The notes below the pieces were generated by a model. That model was not told where the DNA came from. It was given only the letters and a program-made list of their open reading frames with translations, and searched no databases. Both the position numbers and the translations under genes were made by a program. This document shows, piece by piece, positions 9,001 to 41,600 of a stretch of 64,000 nucleotides of DNA. The stretch comes from Sminthopsis crassicaudata (taxonomy: Eukaryota), in assembly GCF_048593235.1 (NCBI RefSeq), contig NC_133618.1, positions 271,275,882 through 271,339,881 of the forward strand, in the 5' to 3' direction. Position 1 is the stretch's first letter. The number at the start of each line of letters is the position of its first letter.

Positions 9001-10144
9001 CTTAGATCAAGCACTGCAATGTGGCATAACTTGTGTTTTCCTCTGAAAAAGAAAAAGAAAAAAAAAAAAAAAAAACAATGCTTCCCTTGGCAACTGAAAT
9101 CCTTCCTTGCACCTGAGAAGTCCAAAGCAGAGTTTGGGATGAGGCGTTACTAGTTCAAGAGAAGATCGTTCTCTTTTATTTGTTACATGACTAGAGAAAT
9201 CAATCATGAAACTTTCTAGATAGTAAGACTATATGTTACATCTTTGAGTCTCTGGTAATGTGCCCATCCAGAACCTTGGTATGATGCTAAAAGTAAAGAC
9301 CCTAGATTCAGGATTGGGTCTGCACAAGTGGAAGTTTGTAAAGATGAGAATTGTCAAAATGGAATATTGATCTTTAATGAATTACTATATCTTAGCCAAT
9401 GGGAATTGAAATCTAAATCAAAATATCTTTTAGGAGAAATATATCTTTTGGGATACTCTGAATAGGTAGTCATGCCTTTTGAAAGTTCTATGTTTGCAGT
9501 ACTTAAAAATCTTTCAGTTCAGTCGGGCATACCTCCCAGTCATTTGTTTAATTTTTTTATTCGTTACTACTCTGTAAAGGTAAAGGCCAGTGTTACTGGG
9601 GAAACTCCTTACTAAAGGAGTAAACATTGGTGCCACCAAGATGTTGAGAAAGACTGTAAATCTCGGTTCTCTGCCATTCCCTTTAATGTCTTAGTATTGG
9701 TAGCCTTTCTGGCAAGATCTGCTGGCAGGCAGCAGGGCCATCCTATTCTCTTTACATCTTGTCAAACTTGCAACAGATCTATTCTGGCCCATTGGTGCTT
9801 TGGCATCAGACCTACTTCTTTAGATTCCTTAGAGTATCCTAGATCCATAACCAGTAACTTAACTGTTTAGTGTTTCCCTTAAATATATGCCTGCCTTATT
9901 TACAACTGTCAAAAAGTCTTGTTACAACTAAAATCTGTTTCGTGATTGGTTGTTTCAGCCTTATATTCCCTCTTAAGACACCTTTTGTATTTTTTTTTTC
10001 TGTCTTTCTATAATGTCCTTCTCCTAGATGTGGTTTTAGGCAGTGCTGTCTATGACCTATTGCTATACTCTCAATTTTTCCAGTCCTCCTTGTTGAGTGG
10101 AAATTTTCTTTTTTGAAAAGTTAAAACAAATAAACAAGGGACAT

Positions 10145-10152
10145 GTGCAATA
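10145..10152 (+). promoter_or_regulatory. miR-25/32/92/363/367 family 8mer site GTGCAATA
   Basis: Exact match to seed AUUGCAC plus A1, ~95 nt upstream of the miR-7 site. Confidence 0.7.
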
Positions 10153-10245
10153 ATTACATATATATATGTGCATATATATATATGTATGTATATACATATA
10201 TTTTTTTAATACTTGTGGACAAAATAATGTTACAAGTTGTTTGAG

Positions 10246-10271
10246 AACAACAAAATCACCAATGTCTTCCA
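10246..10271 (+). promoter_or_regulatory. Extended miR-7 complementary site (TDMD-trigger architecture)
   Basis: AACAACAAAATCAC-CAAT-GTCTTCCA pairs miR-7-5p (UGGAAGACUAGUGAUUUUGUUGUU) at nt 2-8 with A opposite nt 1, and at nt 11-24; nt 9-10 unpaired. Confidence 0.97.
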
Positions 10272-13200
10272 TTTTGATAATATGTATAGTTTCATAAGCA
10301 TTAATGCTTTGTAGGAAAATGTAGTGCCATGTTAGGGGCCAGTGCATGAGCCTAGTAGTAATTTTAAAATTAAAAGTGATGAATTCTTTATATTAATAAC
10401 CAGTAGTATAAAAAAATGGAAAATGTAAAAATTTCCCTTTTTGTGTAAAAGTTCTGAACCTGTATCTTCTCCCTGGGGGGGAAGTGACAGACTAAAAGGA
10501 CTAGTTCAGAAATAGAATTATTCTGGGTTGGAGGCCTTGAATATGTGTGGGGATGTTTCAGCTTCACATAGTATTACATATTCTAAACCTGATATAACTG
10601 TGACTGTCCAATTTATATCACAAACTTAAACTCTGGATGACACCTCCATTTCCCCCACAACGTAGTGATCCTGGCTTATGCTTCTTGTGTGAGATTGTTC
10701 TTCCTATGTCCCTGTATGTTTTCTAGCTTAATCCTGTTTGATTTCTGTATTTAGACATTCTCTGTATCCAGGGACCACAGTACAATTTATATATCTTAAT
10801 TGGGTACTCTTTTATCTGCCTCACATGAGATGCTCTGTCAACTCAAGGGTAGCATGTAGACTTTCACATTTCCTATCTGCACATCACTGTCTCTGGGTTG
10901 TGCAGAGAAATCTTTGTAAATATTAGAATCAAAATATTTGTTTTAGGTTGTCCTCACTTTTCAAATACATTTTATTATTTTTAATGTGGTCTTCTTGCTA
11001 CTTCTCTTGCTTGATTTGCATTTTGAAAATTGGACGGGTAGTCCGTTAGAAGCTTAATAGGTTTCCTTGTAGTGCTTATGTTTGCAGTATGCAGTTTAAG
11101 GATATAACTTTCAAACTTGTACATGTCCTCTTTTTCCTACCTTTCCAGAAGAAGTAGATAATTTTGCCACTCATAGGCTAGTTCATCTTTCTCTGGTAAA
11201 GCAATTCCTGTCTGTAAATGACTTCTTTGAGAAATTGGAGGTGATTTTCTTGAAATTATTGGAGTCCAATTTCCTCAAATAGTGATTAGAATCCCAAAAC
11301 CTCAAATAATCCAGGTTTTATAAAATATGACTCTACAGATATGTGATAAGTGTACAACACTGCATGAGAAAACAACTTTGAGTATGTAGGCCCCTTTGTA
11401 GCAGTTCTCTAGGGACAAGATTCAGGTTCTCTTAGTCTAGACTCAAATAGTTATACCTTTGATTCAAATAGTATAGTGCTTAGGAGAATCAGTTTAAAAA
11501 AAAAATACCTCTGAAACTGCAATGCAAAATAGCACAGTATGCAGGGGGAATGCCCCTGATGCAAACAAAGCCATAAAATAATTTAATAATTTTAAAAGAA
11601 TAACATTTTAGTAGCAATAACTATTTTGCATGTAATAGTAACTAACTTGAATTAGCAAACCTGTAAAGTAAGTTACCACTCAAGTTTGTGGTGTGTGGTG
11701 CTCAGTCCTTGACAGAGCTGCATGAAAGAAAACATGTTTTAGGTAGATGACATCTATAAAAGATGTGTGTGCGCGCATGTCTATGTACACACTAGAGAGG
11801 TTTCATTATGTGAGACTGAAAGCTCCATTTGTTTCCCCAGATAGTGAGCTTTTTCTGGGAAATAAATTGGAGTCTCACCAGCGCATTCCAAGTAGCTTTT
11901 CTACTTGAGACTTTACTTTGAGGATAACTCCTCCATGATAGATTTTTTTTTTCTTCTTTGATTTCTTTAATTCATTTTCTTTTCTAGGATTAAGAAAAGA
12001 ACTTAAATTTGGTATTTGCATTTTCTATATTTGTGGTTAAGAAAGCTCTTAGTGTTACAATTGTGAGAAAGGCTTTATGTTTGTGAATTTGTTTTTCTTT
12101 GTTTTTAACCATATTTTTAATGGAGGAGTGGCCAGAGCCTCTGGCAGCTTGTCCTCTAATACAGAAAACCGTTCCACCTCCCAGCACACCATCCTAGTTC
12201 AGGAGCCAAGGTAGAGTAGTGAGACTAAGTAAATTTTTCTATTGTTTCATACCATCTGTCTATATGGACAATTCACCCTGGCCATTTAGCTCCTAAAAAA
12301 TAACTACATTTCTATATAAGCTAGTTATAAGTCCCTTGGTTCACGATGCTTAATTATATGCCTATATGTGAACCTGGGGAGGGGAGAGGGAAGGCAAGAA
12401 AGTCATGCCTCTTGAACATGATATTCTTTGGTGATTCCCCAAAGGTAAGACGACAACTAAATGTAACCAACATGTCTCAGCCACCAGAGGAATGCACCCC
12501 CTTGGCTTCCTCTTGCTCTTTAGTGTGCCCCACGGTGTTACACATTGGAATAAGCAAGCGATTTTCAGATATCTGGCTTGGTCACAGATGTACATTTGTG
12601 CTAGATAAAGGACTTTATAGAACAGCCACATTAATTATGTATCTAAATGCTGTAATTAACCAGATGCATCCAATGTAAGGATGGTATCCAGATAAGCTCA
12701 TTCATTTAAGGGTGTAAGCATCACCCTTGTGTGGAGATATCACATTAATGAGTGAGCTCTAGTTAAATATGAAGTGTGATCATACAGTATTCCAGGCACT
12801 ATGCAAAATTGGATGAGGTCTTTGCCCTTGAGGAGTTTACATTCTCTTGGTGCTGCTGGTAAAGGCAAATAACTTCCTTTGTTTAGAATATGCTGGGCTG
12901 TTAAAATAAACTTGGCCTAAAAGATTGCTTGTTAAAATTGTTTCTAGAAGCAGAGGGCTACACCAAATTTTAAGGCATTGAAAATTTAACTAGTTTATAT
13001 TGTACTAGCTATGCTATTAATCTTTTCAGAATGTATGTGGAATAGGAGGATAAGGAGTACTATATAAGTAATTTCTTTCAGCATTAGTAAAAGAAACCAC
13101 TTTACTGAATAGGTTCTCCACAACATACTACCTTTGTCCTTTTGTGGTATTATACCCATCACAAAGTTGGCCAGGAAAATCCCTAACAAATATAAAGTTT

Positions 13201-13343
13201 TATATTTACTTTTCTTATTATTTCTGCTGCCGTATCATTTCCACCTTTAAGGGAATGGATTTGTATCCCAGTCTCCCTTGTACCAGTGTGAAATGATCCT
13301 GAATTTTTTTTGTTGGTAATTTTGTAATTCCATTCAGAAGCAT

Positions 13344-13496
13344 CATAGGGATAGACATGTAGAGAACTTGATTGATACCGTCATTTTCTCTTCCCAAAGG
13401 TTTCCCAGTTTTCTCCCTTTCAGTTACAGTATTTGAAAGAAAATTAATTGCATGAATCTCAGCTAAATCCTATGATGCCTCTGAATCAAGAAGTTT
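13344..13496 (+). repeat. Dispersed ~150 bp duplication, copy 1
   Basis: catagggatagacatgtagagaa...ctctgaatcaagaagttt; copy 2 at 15018-15163. Confidence 0.95.
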
Positions 13497-15017
13497 TGTT
13501 TTGCATGTTTATCAGACATGGGTCTGATTGAAGGACCCAAATGCATGATGACCATAAAAGCAACAGTGTGCACAAAAGCCCATAATCCCAGTAGAGCTAG
13601 AATTCTAATATGCATGATTTAAAATGCCTAGTGTCATATAATTACTAGAAAACTGATATATGCATTTATATATAACAAAGCAATAGTAACTATTAATAGC
13701 TTAAATTTACTGCTTGAAAACTCAGTTCTTGTGTGGTTTGCTTCCCATCAATAAAGAGAGGGTAGAGAATAAACAGGGATAGCAGCATGACACTCCAGCT
13801 GTTTAGAAGAGGGTTTATATTAGCCCCCAAAGCATGTTTTTAAAAATAACAGGACAAAGAAGAAGCATGTGGTGTTGATGAATGAATTTCTTAGTTGTCT
13901 CAATCAAAAAGGTGCAGAGTTTCAGGAGTGAGTGGGTGGCCCAACTGTAGTATGGAAAGTAATAACTGGGTCTATTTAAAAAAAGGCAAAAGTGGCCTGA
14001 GTGTAGGCCCAGTAAAACTAGTACTTTGAAGGTGAATGATATCAATAAGCACAGTGCACATATTTCAGGTGTTCAGTAGCTTTTTAATACAATATTTTTA
14101 GGTAATTTTAGCCACTTACAGACAACTGTACTGAATTGTACTGGTGTCAATTAGCAATAATAATGGCTCCCTGCAACAAAGGATATTGTTCCATTTTGCA
14201 GGAATTGACCTGAAAATATTGTTACATCTTTGTTTAGTTGTTATATTGATATATTTTTGAATTTATGTAACTTGAAATAGGTTTTTAGAGCCAAAGATAC
14301 AAAATTATTTAACCCTAATGGTCAGTTAGATTCCATAAGGAATTCTTGCCCCTCAAGATGAATTTATATGCATCCTTATTTCATTAAATAGATTTACTAT
14401 TAACTTCCTCATTTAGGGAGAAAAAAAGCAAATGCTCTTCAATTCACTGCAACACTTCTGGTTGGGGACTAAAGATTCTTGTGGAGCTTTTGGAGTAACT
14501 TGAGATTACCAGAAGCATGTGTGATTATAGCAAACAAGAACTAATACAGTACAAAGAAGTGATAATAAGCTGCTTCCCGCAAAGGTTTTCCTTAAGTTAA
14601 TATAACCTCACTTTAATTGTTGTACAGCTTATCTTGGTACTGTTGGAAAAACTCCATCTTCCAAGGTAAAGGATAAAAATAACCTTCAAATAATCCAGAG
14701 TTGAACCACTTAGTTCATACTTAGCAAGTTTGTTCCCAACACACTTGGAAAGATAAGCTTTACTAAGCCTCTTTAGTAGAACATTTGTGAAACCAACTAG
14801 GGAAATTAAATGTTAATTATTTTTGGTTTAAGACTATATTAACCATCAAGCTTCATTCATCAACTCCTCTAAAAGGGAGTTGTAAATACTGGTACATGCA
14901 ACTCCTTTTATCTTAAAAAACATCAAGAAACTCAAACTTTCAGAATTATTCTTTAAAAGCAAAAACTCACAGTAAGCCTTCCTTCTAAAGATATTTTTCC
15001 CTTGAAAATAAAGGTGC

Positions 15018-15163
15018 CATAGGGATAGACATGTAGAGAATTTGATTAATACCTTCATTTTCTCTTCCCAAAGGTTTCCCAGTTTTCTCCTTTCAGTTAC
15101 AGTATTTCAAAGAAAATCATGAATCTCAGCTAAATGCTATGATGCCTCTGAATCCAGAAGTTT
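15018..15163 (+). repeat. Dispersed ~150 bp duplication, copy 2
   Basis: Six substitutions plus 1-bp and 6-bp indels relative to copy 1. Confidence 0.95.
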
Positions 15164-16049
15164 AGTAAATAGTACTCTTTTTAACAATGAGGTGATTCAG
15201 ACCAGTTCCAATTGCTGCACCATTGTTGAGATGTTAGGTTGTTTTGTTTTTTTCATCATGGGGTGAACTGGAATAGGATATGATAAATTTTTGTAATTGT
15301 ATTATTTTTGAATCTGCTTTTAAATTGTATTGTAAAATAAAACAATTTGACATTAAATTAGGAAGACCCAATACTCACTTATATTCTATGTATTGTATTG
15401 ACTTTCTTTAGTGCAGGAAAGATTGTTTACTTACTGTATGCACATGCAGCACTGTAATCTCTGTTCCATTGCACAGTTATACTTTACAAGGTATATTGTT
15501 AGAATTTCTCGTTGTATATACCTGAAATTTTGCAGACCGCAGCTTGCTGTTATATCTATGCATCTTTGGGATTTTGAAGAAGAGATTTTATTCTTTTGAT
15601 GGTATGAGAAACTTTTTTAAACCATACGTTGGAAATTCTGCAACTCTGTATAAAACTTTTGGGGTTTGTTTTTAGTTTTTAGCAATAAAGCAGCATGAGC
15701 TGAGAATGCACTGAAACTTGACTCTGTCTAAAATTTCTTAAAAAGAGTGAATATTCTGCGGTAATTCTACAAATGATTGTGAAAATGAGTTGGAAGCCTT
15801 AGGAAATGGAAAATCAAAAAAAACTTTCTAAGGAACAAAATAATTCAAAGAATGGAATATATTTACACACAGATCTTATCTCTCCCTTCTCCCATGTCTC
15901 TCTCTTTAAATTTCCCCATTACTGTCAAGGATTTCAATATCCTAGTTACCAAAGCTTATCCATCTCTGGCCAACTTGCTGTACCTCATATTTCCAATCTG
16001 TTGGGGTTTTTTGTTTGTTTTTCATGTTACCAATTTTATTTTTTGTATT

Positions 16050-20080: not shown

Positions 20081-20864
20081 AAGCTGTCTCCCACCTTATT
20101 AAGTGAGCTCCTTGATAACAGGAACTATTTTGCCATTCTTTTCACATGTTTCTTGGCACACATACAGCACTTAATAAATGTTTGTTGACTGGTAAAAATA
20201 TACCAGAAATTCCTTTGTAAGAACAAATACACAAAACATCACAATTTTCTCCAAGTTCTTTTTAATAACTTACTATTTTTTAAAATAAGTACAAGATTCA
20301 TAGGTAGGAAAAAAGAAAAAAGAAAATCTGTAATAATATAGAATGTCAAGATCTCAGCAATATTTATATAAACAAATACTTTGTACAGGTTCAAAATTAA
20401 AATAATATTCTGTTTACTTTCAATATTTCAAAACAAAAGACACATTTGGAAGACAATCATGTATCTTAAGTTTGGGGCACATACAGCCCACTATAATTAC
20501 TAGTAACCTTTGAAGTTATAGTCATTAAATATTTTCTTTAAAAAAAAAAAAAAAAAGACTATACTAAAAGTTTTTTTTTTAAGACTACTAAAACAACTTT
20601 TTAAAAAAGACTACTGACATTTATATAAGCTGAAAAAAATTTTTTTAAACATAACTGAATTCTGAAGCACTGCAAAATGGACAACATTGAAGGGAAGTCT
20701 CAATAAGCTTACTTGGTAAGAAATGTTCTGAAAGACAAATTACTTTATGAAACTTGAATCTTGAGATATATATTCTTGGTCTTTAAAGCTTTCCACTTCC
20801 ATCTTTACTTTTCATCAGTCATAACTTACCAATACATCTGGTTAACCAGAAGAGAAAGAAAGAT

Positions 20865-20870
20865 TTTATT
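20865..20870 (-). terminator. Candidate OIP5 polyadenylation signal AATAAA
   Basis: First AATAAA on the minus strand, ~130 nt after the stop codon. Confidence 0.55.
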
Positions 20871-30000: not shown

Positions 30001-33000
30001 CCTAAAAATGTAAGGACTGGACACAGTCTCTCAAAGATAGTCTGACTACCTGTGCTCTAGGCTTCTCTTAAGGCAACAAAAAGATTTCTAGTCATACATC
30101 TCTGGGGCTAATTTTTGTTTCTCAAATGTAAAACTTCAATCTCAGTTCATCTTATTTATTGGCCTTCAGTCTAATGTATGGATCCTGAATCTGTCATCCA
30201 ATGCAATAGTAATCATTCTAAGCTTTGTGGCATTGACAAATTTAACTACTACAAGTTCCAGGTAAACTCTGATGATCCAGAGTATCCCTTATCAGAGAGC
30301 TCCTCACAGACAAAGTTTAAAAAACAAAGGGGGAGACGGAAGGAGAAAAAAAGGTGGAAAGAGAAGAATATATAAAATGGCACAAAGATTATATAAAATG
30401 TGAAAAAAAATGGGGGAAAATCAATTCTTTTGTTCCAATACATCTAAATATCTTTCATTATAGTTTTATCAAATCAGAAACCACAAACACATTTCAAACA
30501 GTTAGTACCTACCTGCCCAGGAGACCACCTTCAATGCCAATCAGTAAGGACTTATCCAAAATGACATTATTTGTAAGTCCTAGAAAGAGAAACACTAATA
30601 AGAATCTGACTCTCTAGTAGTAATAATTAGATTTCTTCATTTAGTACCTTCTAGCCTGGTTCATCTTTCTCAATAAAACAATAATTATAAAGCTCCATAA
30701 GATGCAAGGTATGGTATATTAGGCCTGGAGATACAAAGAAAAAAAAGGTTCAGGGGGCATATATTCTAATGGAACACAACACATACATAGAGAGAAGTTA
30801 AAAACAAGATAAGCTGAGAAAAGTAACAACACTGTTTATCAAGGAAAGATTCAGAGAAGATGGGTCCTAAACTAACTTGGAAGTTAAAAGCTCTGGGCAG
30901 ACCAAGCTAAGGGTTGAGGATATTCCAGGTAGGGAGAAGGTGCCACGTGAAGGTGAAGAAATGGAAAGTTAAATATGTGAGGAATCTTCACTTTGGTTGG
31001 AATGTAAAGAAATAAGTCTGGAAAGATAGGTTGAAACCAGGGTGTAGCAAGGGAAATGAAAAAGCTGAAGACTTTGCATTTTATCCTAGAGACAATATTG
31101 AGCAAAGGAGTCAGACCTGTATCTAAAGAACACATTGAGTTGGAAGAGTTTAGATGGAAACTATTAGGAAACTTTTGTAAAGAGAAGTGTGTGGGAAAAG
31201 ATTTGAATTAGGATGTCGACTATGAGAAAAGAAAGCAGAGAGAGATGGCAAAGAGGGCGTAGAATGGCTTGGCTCATTAGCTGGGGTGGCAGGGAACAGT
31301 GAGAGAGAAACAGAATCAAGAACTAATCCTAGGGCATACTTTGACATTTTAAGAGAGAACTGGAGAAGAGTGGGAAGTTCCATGTTGAACATATTAGGTC
31401 TGGGGTACCAGATAGCATCTAGGCAATCTCCAGCACGCAGCTGGCCATGCTTGGCTATGACTTCAGGGAGCAGGAGTACTAATGGGCCTCTGGAATATAC
31501 AGACAAGTAGAAAGGACCATCAAAGAACAGAACACAGAGAGGTAAGAGAACAGGGCACAAAACACCACCAGGGAGAACCATATATGGCAAGCCAGAGAAG
31601 GGTCTTGAAATGAAATAAGGAATAGTCTGATTAAAGGTTAAAGAAAAGCAGAGAGAATACCCTAGAAATCAGCAGAGACCCCTCTCCCCCCCACATCTTT
31701 TTCTCTTCCCTCTTTCTCCCTCCATTCGTCTCTTTTCCTTCCTTCATCTTTCTCTCCCCCTTTCTCTTCTCTCTCCCCTCCCCCCCTTCTCTCTCTTCAC
31801 ACTACGGATTTGAAAGTCACATTTCGAAAACATCCTAGATTTATTTTTGCTTTTTCTTTGTATTACCCACGGAATAGCACAGTGCCTGGCAGATAACAAT
31901 ATAATCAATATTTGTTGAGTGGCTGCCAACTCCCACCTATTTGTATGGTGGAACAAGATCATTTTGAGGGTTGAGCAACTAGAAATCCATAACCCACAAC
32001 CCAGAGAGCTTTGGGAAGTCTGCTTGAAGACTCCCAGGTAAACAACCGTGTACAGGACTGGAAAGAAATCCAAACCCTCCATTTTACAAAGGAAGCAAGG
32101 GAAGCTCCAAAAGTGAGGTGCGCAAAGACACAAGAGAAGAAAATGACAGAGGAGGAGAATCTGAGACCCTGAGACCTCTCAGGCTTACGCTGACAAGCTT
32201 AATCAGCACTGATTTCACTGGACTGTCAGGAGAAACAAACGAGATAATACGTGTAAACTGCTTTGCACTTTGAAGCGCTAAGTAAAGGCTAGTTATTTAT
32301 TTTAGGTTTAACCCACTATTATATGGAGCTGGCCCCAGGCCCTAATATTCGTCTGCCCGTAGATCGCTCGGCCTGGGACTGACCCCCCATTCCAGAACTC
32401 CCTCCCCGGCCAGGGCTTCCCCTTGTGAGAGGTTGTCTTCCAGTCATTAAGTATTGCACTAAGCGCCTATTATGTGCCAACCACTGTGCCAAACCCGCTC
32501 CTGTGTGCCGGCGCGGTATCCGCGGTCACCCCGCGCAGCGCCGGCCCCAGGACATCGCGCTCCTCATTCATGCATGGGTTCTTTCGTTCCTTCATCCATT
32601 CACCCCTCGTTCCACAGGGCTGGGGGAGGGGCCGCGCCGCACTCACTGCTGAAGACGAGGATACTCAGGAGACGCGTCTCCTCCCCGCACAGATGCACCG
32701 AGTCTCCCAGCACGGCGGAGCAGCCCACACACTGGAACACCACCAGGTTCTCCAAAAGCCCCGAGTCCCCGGACGCCGGGGGGGCCGCGGGATCCGGAAG
32801 GGCCGAGGGCCCCGGCACGGCCTCGTCTCCGCGGAGTCCTCGGGGACCCAGAGGGCAAGACCTCTTGGCCGCCTGCGTCTCCCACTCCATGGAGGCGAAG
32901 GAGGTATCCTCGCCCACCGATGGCTCGCTGATCTGCCGGCACTCACTAACGGCCTGCGCCTCCAATTCCTCGAAAATCAAGCTGAGCGACTTCTTCCCGG

Positions 33001-33497: not shown

Positions 33498-33590
33498 ATG
33501 GCCTTCCCTCTGGCTGTGGAGTTGGACTCTTTCAAGTACTGCGAGCTGCAGAGCTTGGCCAAGAGCTTGGGCCTCCGCGCCAACCTGCGG
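33498..33590 (+). CDS. NUSAP1: NUSAP1 exon 1 ([31 protein letters not shown])
   Basis: ATG at 33498, donor CGG|gtacga, 93 nt. Confidence 0.95.
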
Positions 33591-38600: not shown

Positions 38601-41600
38601 TCATGATCCCAAGTTTATAAAAGCCCAGAACTTGTCCAAGATCACACAGGTAGTAAGGGCTAGAGCAGCAGGGATTTGAATTGAGGATTTCTGCTGCTCT
38701 TTCTGTTCTATCTTCCTTCTCAGCCTTAGCTCATCACTTCTTAATATTCAGATCCAACTGAACCTGAAAAGACACCTATTGCACCCCTCTCATTTTAGAG
38801 ATGAGGAAAGAAGCTCTTAGGAAGTAAGGAGCAGAATCATAGCCAAACCCAGGTCCTCTTATTCAGATCTAATGCACTTTGGAAAAGTATGCTTTATTTC
38901 AAGGACCTGTTATTTTAACAGTATGGAGTACAACCCCTACTGATGGAAAAATCCTCTATAATTTAGGAGATGGCATTTAAAAATTGCTGTCTGCTGCCAT
39001 ACCCACCTTAATTCTCCCTGCAAAAATCACTACAGCCAGGCTAGTGATTTTAGTTCTAAAATCAGATAAGATAGTTCTCCAACAGTAGTTCCTCTCTGGA
39101 CCCACATGCCTTAATCTTGAAGTTTCCAATCTAATACTTAAAAGAATTTGAACTGTGCTAGTATAACCTTCAAAAACCCAAGGTCATCCATGACAAGGCA
39201 TTAGAGTAGAATAAAAATGCCCTAATTTTCTTCCCTTAGACATAATCTTCATTTAACAGGTTTTTCAAATATTGCCTTTACACATAAGTATGTTTTGTAT
39301 TTCATTTAGAATATAGTTTTTCATATGTAGAGTAGTTTCTCACCAAGTATTTTCCTGTATGTGATAGATTTGTTCCTCTTTTTTACAGAATGGCAAAAGT
39401 AATATCTCTCCTTCCTCTCATGAGGACATAGAAATGCTTAATGACAATGAAGAAAAATCTGATCAGGAAACTACCCCTGTTTCTGTCACTTCACCCCTGG
39501 GAAGAGGCAAAGCAACTCCAGAAAGCAGTGGCTCCAAGGTGAGAGTGTGGAAACCCAGGCTAGATGAACCCTGTGAAAAGGGGCAATGTGAGGAGCAGCT
39601 AGGTGGCGCAGTGGATAGAGCACCAGCTCCTGAAGTCAGAAGGACCTGAGTTCAAATCTGGTCTCAGACACTTAGCACTTCCTAGCTGTGTGACCTTGGG
39701 CAAGTCACTTAACCCCAATTGCCTCAGAAAAGAAAAAGGGGGGGAGTGTGAGTGACTAAATTTGTTGCTGCATTCTGAGGATATTAATTAGGACTTAATA
39801 TTACTGCAACTATCTAAGGAAAATATAAGATAAACTAGAAATAACTGCTGGGTTCAATGCTGGGAAAAATCTATGGTGGTGAGTTTTCTATTTGTTCCAG
39901 GCTTCATCAAGTTATCCTAAGTAAAAGAGATACCTAGGAGGTACAGAGATTTCATTTTAAGCATGACCCATACAATGCATGTGTTGAGAGGTCGTTCTAT
40001 GTGGGATATATTCAGACTTTTATGTCTGAGATATGTTCTAGAAAGGAGACTCTTTTTTTCGTGATAGTGTAGATATATAATGTAGAGAAATAGAAGTATA
40101 AACCTAAAACTTTTTTTTATTTTTACAATTTGATTCTGAAGGATTCTCCATCTGACCTCTCCATCTGACTTCATTAATCTTTGTGGACAGTGAGCCATTG
40201 TTCTCTGGAGTTTTCCCCTCATATTCTCAAGTAGCTTGATAAAGAATTCTTCATTTTATCCTTTTTTTTTTTTTTTTTTTTTTTTAAGATGTCATTTCCC
40301 CAAGACTTACTATTCTTAACTTAATATACTTTTAATCTAGATGTGCTCAGGCTCTACTTGTCTAGATCAGGTTCCCAATCTTACAGGTATTCCAAAGGAA
40401 TCCTATATTCAAATTTTCCTCAATGGTAGACAAAAAAGTATCTCCCAATTGCACATTACTTTATGATGCTATTGACATTGCAGCTAAAGAGTTAGCACTA
40501 TTCTGTCTTTCTCCCTACTGTCTTTAAAAATAGACGAGTGAAAATTCTTTCCTTCTATCTCTACTTAATTTTTTGTTTCCCTTACTTTGGTAACCCCTTT
40601 ATGGATTAATGGAGTCTTTGAATTTGTAGCAGGATCATTCAGAGATGACAGAAAGTGATCATACTGGGTCTTCCAGAGAAAAAAAATACCAAAAGGAGAA
40701 TCTCTTAGCCATTGTAGAGGTCACAAAGCCATCCAAAGAAAACCAAAAGAAAAAGCAGACAATTTACTCAGAAGAAAATGAAATGGAAGGTATGTAAAGT
40801 AGCTAAAGAATAGAAAACCAAAAAAAAAAAAAAATTTAAAAAAAAATCCAACAATATTAACCATGAGTTGGAGTTCCACAAAGTTTAAGTAAAATAGAGA
40901 ACCTATTCTTCTGCTTTCTTTTCTTTGGAGGCAGGCTTAAAAGTATAGAAACTAGGAAAATAAGCATCTCCCTCCTCCCAGGAATCTGTGTGGCTAAATC
41001 CATCAGATTGAGAAATTGCATGAAATGAAATTTGTTTTTATGATCTGAGAATAAGTTTCATTAAGCCTTTTTAACTAATATTTCTCTCTGAATTAGGTGA
41101 TACACAAGATGGTTTGTCCAAACCTAAGAAAAGGAAAACAATATTTACAACTCCAAGTAAGTTTTTAAATAATTGTTAAGACACAGCCCTAAGTCAGATG
41201 CAAAGAAAATGCATAAGGAACTACTTGAATGCTTCTCTCTTTGATATTTATATTGCTTCATAAATAATGAATTAGAATAGCAAAGGCTCTCCAAGTTAAA
41301 TTGTGATGCATAAAAATGCTTTCTATCCAAACCAAGATATTTTGGTGAGCAGTGAAAAGGGTAAAGAATAGATAATATAATACAAGAAAATCTACAAGGT
41401 AGGACTATTCTCCCCTATCTTAGCCTGCCTAGAGTTACCAAAAACTTACTATGCTTGGGAAAACTTGCGTAAAGACCATAATGAAATTTGCACATCTCTG
41501 ATAATGTTCATCAACAATCATTACTAAGTGCCTCCTTATGTGCCAGATACTGGACTAAGTGCAGGGGGCCGAAATTAAAGATAAATGAAGCAATCTCTGC

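Follow-up and report, generated by a model that had tools for sequence, protein, structure and literature searches.

The fat-tailed dunnart Sminthopsis crassicaudata very probably carries, on the + strand at 10246-10271 of the window (i.e. the whole 64-kb stretch of DNA that was analysed, free of any N), the orthologue of the miR-7 trigger located in the terminal exon of Cyrano (OIP5-AS1), with a mechanism that we assign by homology with mouse and human. The original prediction had read this stretch as marsupial DNA (it belongs to S. crassicaudata) harbouring an intact Cyrano trigger, and synteny, ordered sequence elements, homology of the conserved core and pairing architecture all agree with it. 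The site itself is a 26-mer, AACAACAAAATCACCAATGTCTTCCA (i.e. AACAACAAAATCAC-CAAT-GTCTTCCA), which was recovered as an exact string at the predicted position and strand, and which remains the only copy in the window when up to three mismatches are allowed.

When the site was folded against the 24-nt miR-7-5p, RNAduplex returned eight pairs (miR-7 nt 1-8), a 2x4 internal loop and 14 pairs (nt 11-24), the same architecture of 8mer, loop and 3' helix that had been predicted. Along the + strand of the target, the predicted duplex comprises 14 contiguous Watson-Crick pairs to the 3' region of miR-7 (nt 11-24) at 10246-10259, the CAAT loop (four target nucleotides left unpaired opposite miR-7 nt 9-10) at 10260-10263 and the 8mer seed match GTCTTCCA (nt 2-8 plus an A opposite nt 1, also recovered by the motif scan) at 10264-10271. 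In combining a seed match, a central internal loop and extensive 3' pairing, the site displays the pairing of triggers for target-directed miRNA degradation (TDMD). The energy of the duplex (-28.6 kcal/mol, as compared to -36.7 for a perfect complement) sets it apart from the remainder of the window, in which the next-best locus reached -20.3 and the mean was -8.5 (sd 2.5; 25,584 tiles, both strands). The miR-7 sequence employed in these predictions agrees with the fly 23-mer (PMC7142546) and is contained in a tetrapod precursor (L012), the dunnart's own miR-7 being taken as identical; we infer that it is so from the identity of miR-7 between fly and tetrapod and from a target site that two marsupials share unaltered. 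The 3' helix amounts to 13 pairs when the 23-nt miR-7 isoform is used, and the seed match is predicted to be locally accessible to an average degree (54th percentile). Further miR-7 8mer seed matches, devoid of 3' pairing, occur at 40668-40675 (+), 32435-32442 (+) and 20447-20454 (-); the best duplex near 40641 has an energy of -20.2 kcal/mol, and the three are consistent with background.

For 22 specified bases and a 4-nt loop, the number of matches expected by chance in 2x64 kb (given the base composition of the window) is 1.9e-8, rising to 1.7e-7 when loops of 0-8 nt are admitted, and none of 100 dinucleotide shuffles of the window gave a match to the 26-mer, in keeping with the earlier contention that so many specified bases could hardly have come together by accident. 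It is thus extremely improbable that the site represents a chance match or, in another version of this reading, a mir-7 gene or decayed mir-7 copy seen from its antisense strand. Such explanations do apply elsewhere: a metagenome scan for both halves of the miR-7 site (gap 0-8 nt) yielded 62 loci; in 59 of these the gap is 2 nt and the match is a mir-7 gene of contaminating animal DNA read on its antisense strand (three of them Rfam-confirmed), and a further match (L047, discussed below) looks like a chance recurrence of 22/22 bases. Besides the low expectation in the window (~2e-8), what speaks against extending them to the dunnart is that its gap measures 4 nt, not 2, and that its flanks are orthologous to Cyrano. 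A mir-7 precursor (RF00053) at the site was rejected on the basis of its fold, the region forming no hairpin and neither of its strands surpassing shuffled sequence (z 0.13 and -0.74, as compared to -7.0 for the true precursor L012, which scores 92.7 bits to Rfam RF00053), and an Rfam scan of the 64-kb window yielded no family at gathering score, hence no mir-7 gene and no curated Cyrano model.

The metagenome loci furnished several observations of their own. Three mir-7 precursor loci (L012, L028 and L058; metagenome Ga0181612) come from the same sample as L027, a tetrapod Cyrano orthologue used below for comparison, and the three mir-7 paralogues of the L027 host encode the exact 24-mer. In L012 the mir-7 gene is found downstream of KH3 exons of HNRNPK, the host gene of mir-7-1; the three loci represent host tetrapod DNA within a metagenome assembly. 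At L047 (8453-8478; Ga0207084_1011) the arrangement is AACAACAAAATCAC-TCAG-GTCTTCCA; as a Cyrano-like site this locus was rejected, since its flanks show no homology to those of Cyrano and the match falls within a 322-aa ORF of a gene-dense, prokaryote-like contig, with a tRNA and a 2141-aa ORF as neighbours. Most likely it is a 22/22 coincidence, given the size of the metagenome collection. Another contig of metagenome origin, 2.2 kb long (L041, 1536-1557), has both halves of the miR-7 complement directly adjoining, with no central bases (AACAACAAAATCACGTCTTCCA).

The genomic neighbourhood is the one that typifies Cyrano: the site lies downstream of OIP5 on the opposite strand, and OIP5 is arranged head-to-head with NUSAP1. 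The coding sequence of OIP5 (Mis18-beta) was mapped by tblastn to five exons on the - strand (33121-32648, 30577-30515, 27626-27495, 24420-24337 and 21098-21003, with approximate junctions; stop 21002-21000), which show 100% identity to the 281-aa S. crassicaudata Mis18-beta P0001; for the first exon (- strand), the identity to Mis18-beta is 82% in Antechinus, 78% in the Tasmanian devil and lower in other marsupials. The first coding exon of NUSAP1 was placed from its ORF sequence at 33498-33590 (+, end approximate), and a CpG island separates the two genes at 32-34 kb (GC 0.58, CpG o/e 0.79). A NUSAP gene (PF16006) is called at the equivalent position in 7/7 of the marsupial loci fetched. Pfam scored OIP5 exon 1 alone at 21 bits, below threshold, and neither this exon nor NUSAP1 exon 1 had a match among PDB sequences; a protein-database search established the identity instead. 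The distance from the OIP5 stop to the miR-7 site is 10,729 nt, with OIP5 and the site on opposite strands (tail-to-tail); the predicted placement (about 10.7 kb past the OIP5 stop and antisense to it, in a locus syntenic with OIP5/NUSAP1) is hence recovered, with both genes mapped in the window. In the brushtail possum (L064), a called gene at 1-36398 (-) with a 211-aa Tim17-family product spans the entire OIP5/Cyrano locus on the Cyrano strand, and has the look of a gene model produced by a long intron or by read-through.

The site is accompanied by further sequence elements of Cyrano. The LncLOOM study (PMC7798263) treats Cyrano from 18 vertebrates and describes nine ordered elements kept in all but shark, the opossum standing at layer 8 with the longest exonic Cyrano sequence (10,155 nt). 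The published order is AUGGCG (5' end), UGUGCAAUA (miR-25/92), the two miR-7 halves, UGUAUAG, WGCAUGA, CUAUGCA and GCAAUAAA (the poly(A) signal, PAS), and one conserved-core element carries no name in the text that served for matching. Measured against this list, 8/9 elements are counted on the dunnart + strand in the published order (starts 10144, 10246, 10264, 10283, 10343, 15556 and 15682). Besides the two miR-7 halves, these include the miR-25/92 seed match TGTGCAATA (element 2; 10144-10152, +), which is the sole + strand copy in the window and invariant in the sugar glider (L068) and L027, and two motifs supported by both the motif scan and the three-way alignment, namely the Pumilio recognition element TGTATAG (element 6; 10283-10289, +) and the Rbfox motif TGCATGA (10343-10349, +). 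Towards the 3' end they include the miR-153 seed match CTATGCA (element 8; 15556-15562, +) and the combined poly(A) signal and miR-137 site GCAATAAA (element 9; 15682-15689, +), the latter being the sole copy in the window on both strands and each of the two being unchanged in 8/8 marsupials. Directly after GCAATAAA stands GCAGCATG (15690-15698), also invariant in eight marsupials, which presents an Rbfox-type GCAUG at the cleavage region.

The spacing of the elements points in the same direction as their order. PMC7798263 places the miR-25/92 match ~60 nt before the miR-7 site, the Rbfox motif ~55 nt after the Pumilio element and the miR-153 match ~100 nt before the PAS; in the dunnart the Pumilio-Rbfox spacing is 54 nt, and that between the miR-153 match and the PAS is about 120 nt (126 nt start to start), in rough agreement. 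The miR-25/92-miR-7 spacing is 93 nt in the dunnart and 62 nt in the sugar glider, the former being wide because an imperfect AT-rich microsatellite (10157-10201, detected by TRF), 31 nt longer than that of the glider, stretches the gap. Each of the accessory elements fell in its place in at most 0.45% of 2000 dinucleotide shuffles, and all four did so together in 0/2000.

The conservation of the region was assessed in the OIP5 loci of seven other marsupials, fetched with 10 kb of flank, which reached the miR-7 site only in the sugar glider and ended short of it in the Tasmanian devil, Antechinus, brushtail possum, koala, monito del monte and tammar (in the tammar by 165 nt). The glider carries an identical 26-mer with all neighbouring elements present, and L027 carries it as well, the CAAT loop included; in the three-way alignment the letters of the loop are the same in dunnart, glider and L027. 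While dunnart and glider share 75% identity over 6.8 kb, they share 96% in 10209-10408 (the most conserved 200 nt) and 100% in the 60-nt windows across 10209-10288. L027 matches the window with 85.7% identity over 238 nt (10164-10399) and 80.6% over 227 nt (11445-11670). The conserved core of Cyrano, described as a 67-nt element that extends to ~300 nt in tetrapods, is thereby recognizable around the miR-7 site, as a block delimited by identity to L027 and the glider at 10128-10410 (+) and split by the AT-rich microsatellite. A second deeply conserved block (11409-11808, +; seen with the glider, L027 and the seven-species alignment) is 88-91% identical to the glider, fully so at 11689-11748, and contains GCATG motifs. 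The dasyurids (devil and Antechinus) are 84-90% identical everywhere, i.e. too close to reveal constraint. The alignments show the miR-7 site to be under strong purifying selection.

Conservation of this kind could also be produced by a DNA-level element (e.g. an enhancer) or by a - strand transcript or ORF, the complementarity to miR-7 then being without RNA function. We consider this very improbable: the ORF that lends it support (94 aa, 10063-10347, - strand), although it overlaps the site, has no Pfam match, and its frame is broken by the 31-nt length difference in the sugar glider and by single-base gaps in L027. Moreover, the accessory RNA motifs are confined to the + strand, where a conserved poly(A) signal closes the series, and the orthologous sequence of mouse and human is a proven cytoplasmic RNA. 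The site region had been described as ORF-less, which holds in the sense that its ORFs show neither Pfam matches nor frames that are conserved. Under the Cyrano reading, which we prefer, we infer from the strand-specific motifs and the conserved PAS that the + strand is transcribed over the site; the PAS, the Rbfox motifs enriched on the + strand alone and the lack of any conserved or Pfam-matching ORF also favour, indirectly, a spliced, polyadenylated and non-coding RNA.

The ordered chain of motifs and the enrichment of Rbfox motifs suggest a Cyrano terminal exon that would extend at minimum over 10128-15710 (+), and whose 5' boundary may be near 6 kb. The stretch from 6.2 to 15.7 kb contains ten copies of WGCATGA on the + strand and one on the - strand (expected 1.4-1.75; ten are reached in 0/500 shuffles), and the + strand count agrees with the enrichment of 9.8 Rbfox motifs per Cyrano stated in PMC7798263. 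Four of these motifs are clustered in 340 nt (13449-13790, +), and the one at 13449 sits in a segment duplicated to 15018-15166. This duplication (~150 nt, 91% identical, copied from 13344-13499) falls within the inferred terminal exon, where the miR-153 site and the PAS follow a short way downstream, and is specific to the dunnart lineage, since it is absent at this position in Antechinus, devil, glider and other marsupials. A scan for the acceptor of the terminal exon produced 12 candidates (0.3-7.6 kb), none of them decisive. Neither a CpG island nor an upstream AUGGCG was found in 1-10 kb of the window, so that exons 1-2, with the promoter, would lie beyond its left edge. The inferred 3' end of Cyrano (~15.71 kb) stops ~5.3 kb short of the OIP5 stop, and for this reason the main Cyrano and OIP5 isoforms probably do not overlap in the dunnart, despite the name OIP5-AS1; on the - strand, AATAAA signals come closest at 20865 and 19205.

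By analogy with the mouse and human systems, we propose that transcription of Cyrano would start at a promoter upstream of the window, run along the + strand and end at GCAAUAAA near 15.7 kb, and that miR-7 loaded in AGO would bind the site through its seed and its entire 3' half. The 2x4 internal loop would block slicing, bend the duplex and draw the miRNA's 3' end from the PAZ pocket; the ZSWIM8-CUL3 ligase would read this bent conformation together with the RNA that flanks it for ~25 nt to either side and would polyubiquitylate AGO, upon which AGO would be degraded, the freed miR-7 destroyed and Cyrano re-used. The individual steps have precedents: in mouse, miR-7 is destroyed with multiple turnover under the direction of the Cyrano site, on which the decay depends; a short loop over miR-7 nt 9-10 should prevent slicing; the polyubiquitylation of AGO2-miR-7-CYRANO by ZSWIM8-CUL3 has been reconstituted and the ligase seen by cryo-EM clamping it. 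Recognition by ZSWIM8 was found to need a bent duplex, a vacated PAZ pocket and ~25 nt of sequence-independent flanking RNA per side, and an altered length of the trigger loop weakens ZSWIM8 binding. The dunnart site offers such flanks on the condition that the region is transcribed, since the conserved block extends for over 100 nt to either side of it and the inferred 3' end is over 5 kb away. As the 4-nt loop is kept and the site lies deep in the inferred exon, all the sequence-level attributes required of a trigger are in place, and ZSWIM8-dependent decay of miR-7 would by analogy be expected in the dunnart.

A rise of the miRNA upon loss of the site or of ZSWIM8 has been shown for the Cyrano of mouse and human only, and Cyrano-like sites retargeted to other miRNAs inhibit largely without ZSWIM8 in 293T cells, on account of which the architecture of the site is by itself no proof of ZSWIM8-dependent decay. 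The same behaviour of retargeted sites lends some support to a reading, improbable in our judgement, in which the locus is a true Cyrano orthologue but acts in marsupials only as a high-affinity miR-7 target or sponge, or in which Cyrano is too scarce in relation to miR-7 for decay with multiple turnover to be of consequence. The selective context also differs, as outside placentals the network lacks its circRNA arm. Against this weigh the 26/26 positions (loop and 3' half included) that are identical in dunnart, glider and L027 over a background of 75%, an extent of identity that targeting through the seed alone would not need, as well as the importance of loop length for ZSWIM8 binding and the reported conservation of the site from fish to human, by which it is older than Cdr1as. 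We therefore retain the reading of the site as a degradation trigger.

Among known systems, the dunnart locus resembles Cyrano/OIP5-AS1 (in mouse Oip5os1 or 1700020I14Rik) in its synteny, in the 8mer, 2x4 loop and full 3' pairing, and in the ordered miR-25/92, PRE (Pumilio), Rbfox, miR-153 and PAS elements, and differs from it only in lineage detail, e.g. the internal duplication at 15018-15166. The opossum (Monodelphis), a marsupial like the dunnart but of a different order, is reported in PMC7798263 to possess elements 1-9 with both miR-7 halves; it was compared through this published description and not base by base. Other ZSWIM8-dependent TDMD triggers (NREP/libra for miR-29, Serpine1 for miR-30, HSUR1 for miR-27 and the viral m169 and UL144-145) likewise join a seed match to extensive 3' pairing across a central mismatch or loop, with decay of the miRNA rather than repression of the target as the outcome, but they address other miRNAs from unrelated host transcripts, and Cyrano is reported to be far more efficient than they are, with multiple turnover. 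Cdr1as/ciRS-7 binds the same miR-7 and belongs to the same placental brain network as Cyrano, yet it is circular, has many seed-type sites without 3' pairing, and stabilises miR-7 rather than destroying it.

Cdr1as is reported to be exclusive to placental mammals, and miR-671 has diverged in marsupials. The circuit envisaged in the original prediction is accordingly upheld with respect to the trigger, whose site is intact, and does not carry over to marsupials with respect to the relief of Cdr1as, which had been cited for mouse; with Cdr1as restricted to placentals, the output of the marsupial trigger would fall on ordinary miR-7 targets. We think it likely that the marsupial Cyrano trigger represents an ancestral two-part circuit, in which the lncRNA destroys miR-7 in the absence of a circRNA buffer. 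The microsatellite and the 150-nt duplication might modulate the efficiency of the trigger, although nothing suggests that they do so. The prediction had further placed prior knowledge of the system in eutherians and of the site in fish, which is correct as far as it goes, but retention in marsupials is not new either, the opossum being among the 18 species of PMC7798263. The dunnart site is, in other words, already known in kind, both its conservation from fish to human (opossum included) and the ZSWIM8-CUL3 mechanism having been published. The present analysis extends the list of species in which the Cyrano trigger is intact by the dunnart and the sugar glider, with no new biology, and indicates that a mechanistically understood regulatory RNA element is recoverable from raw sequence alone. 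If the two-part circuit is real, the dunnart, being a laboratory marsupial, could reveal which selective advantage the decay of miR-7 through Cyrano conferred before the placental network came into being.
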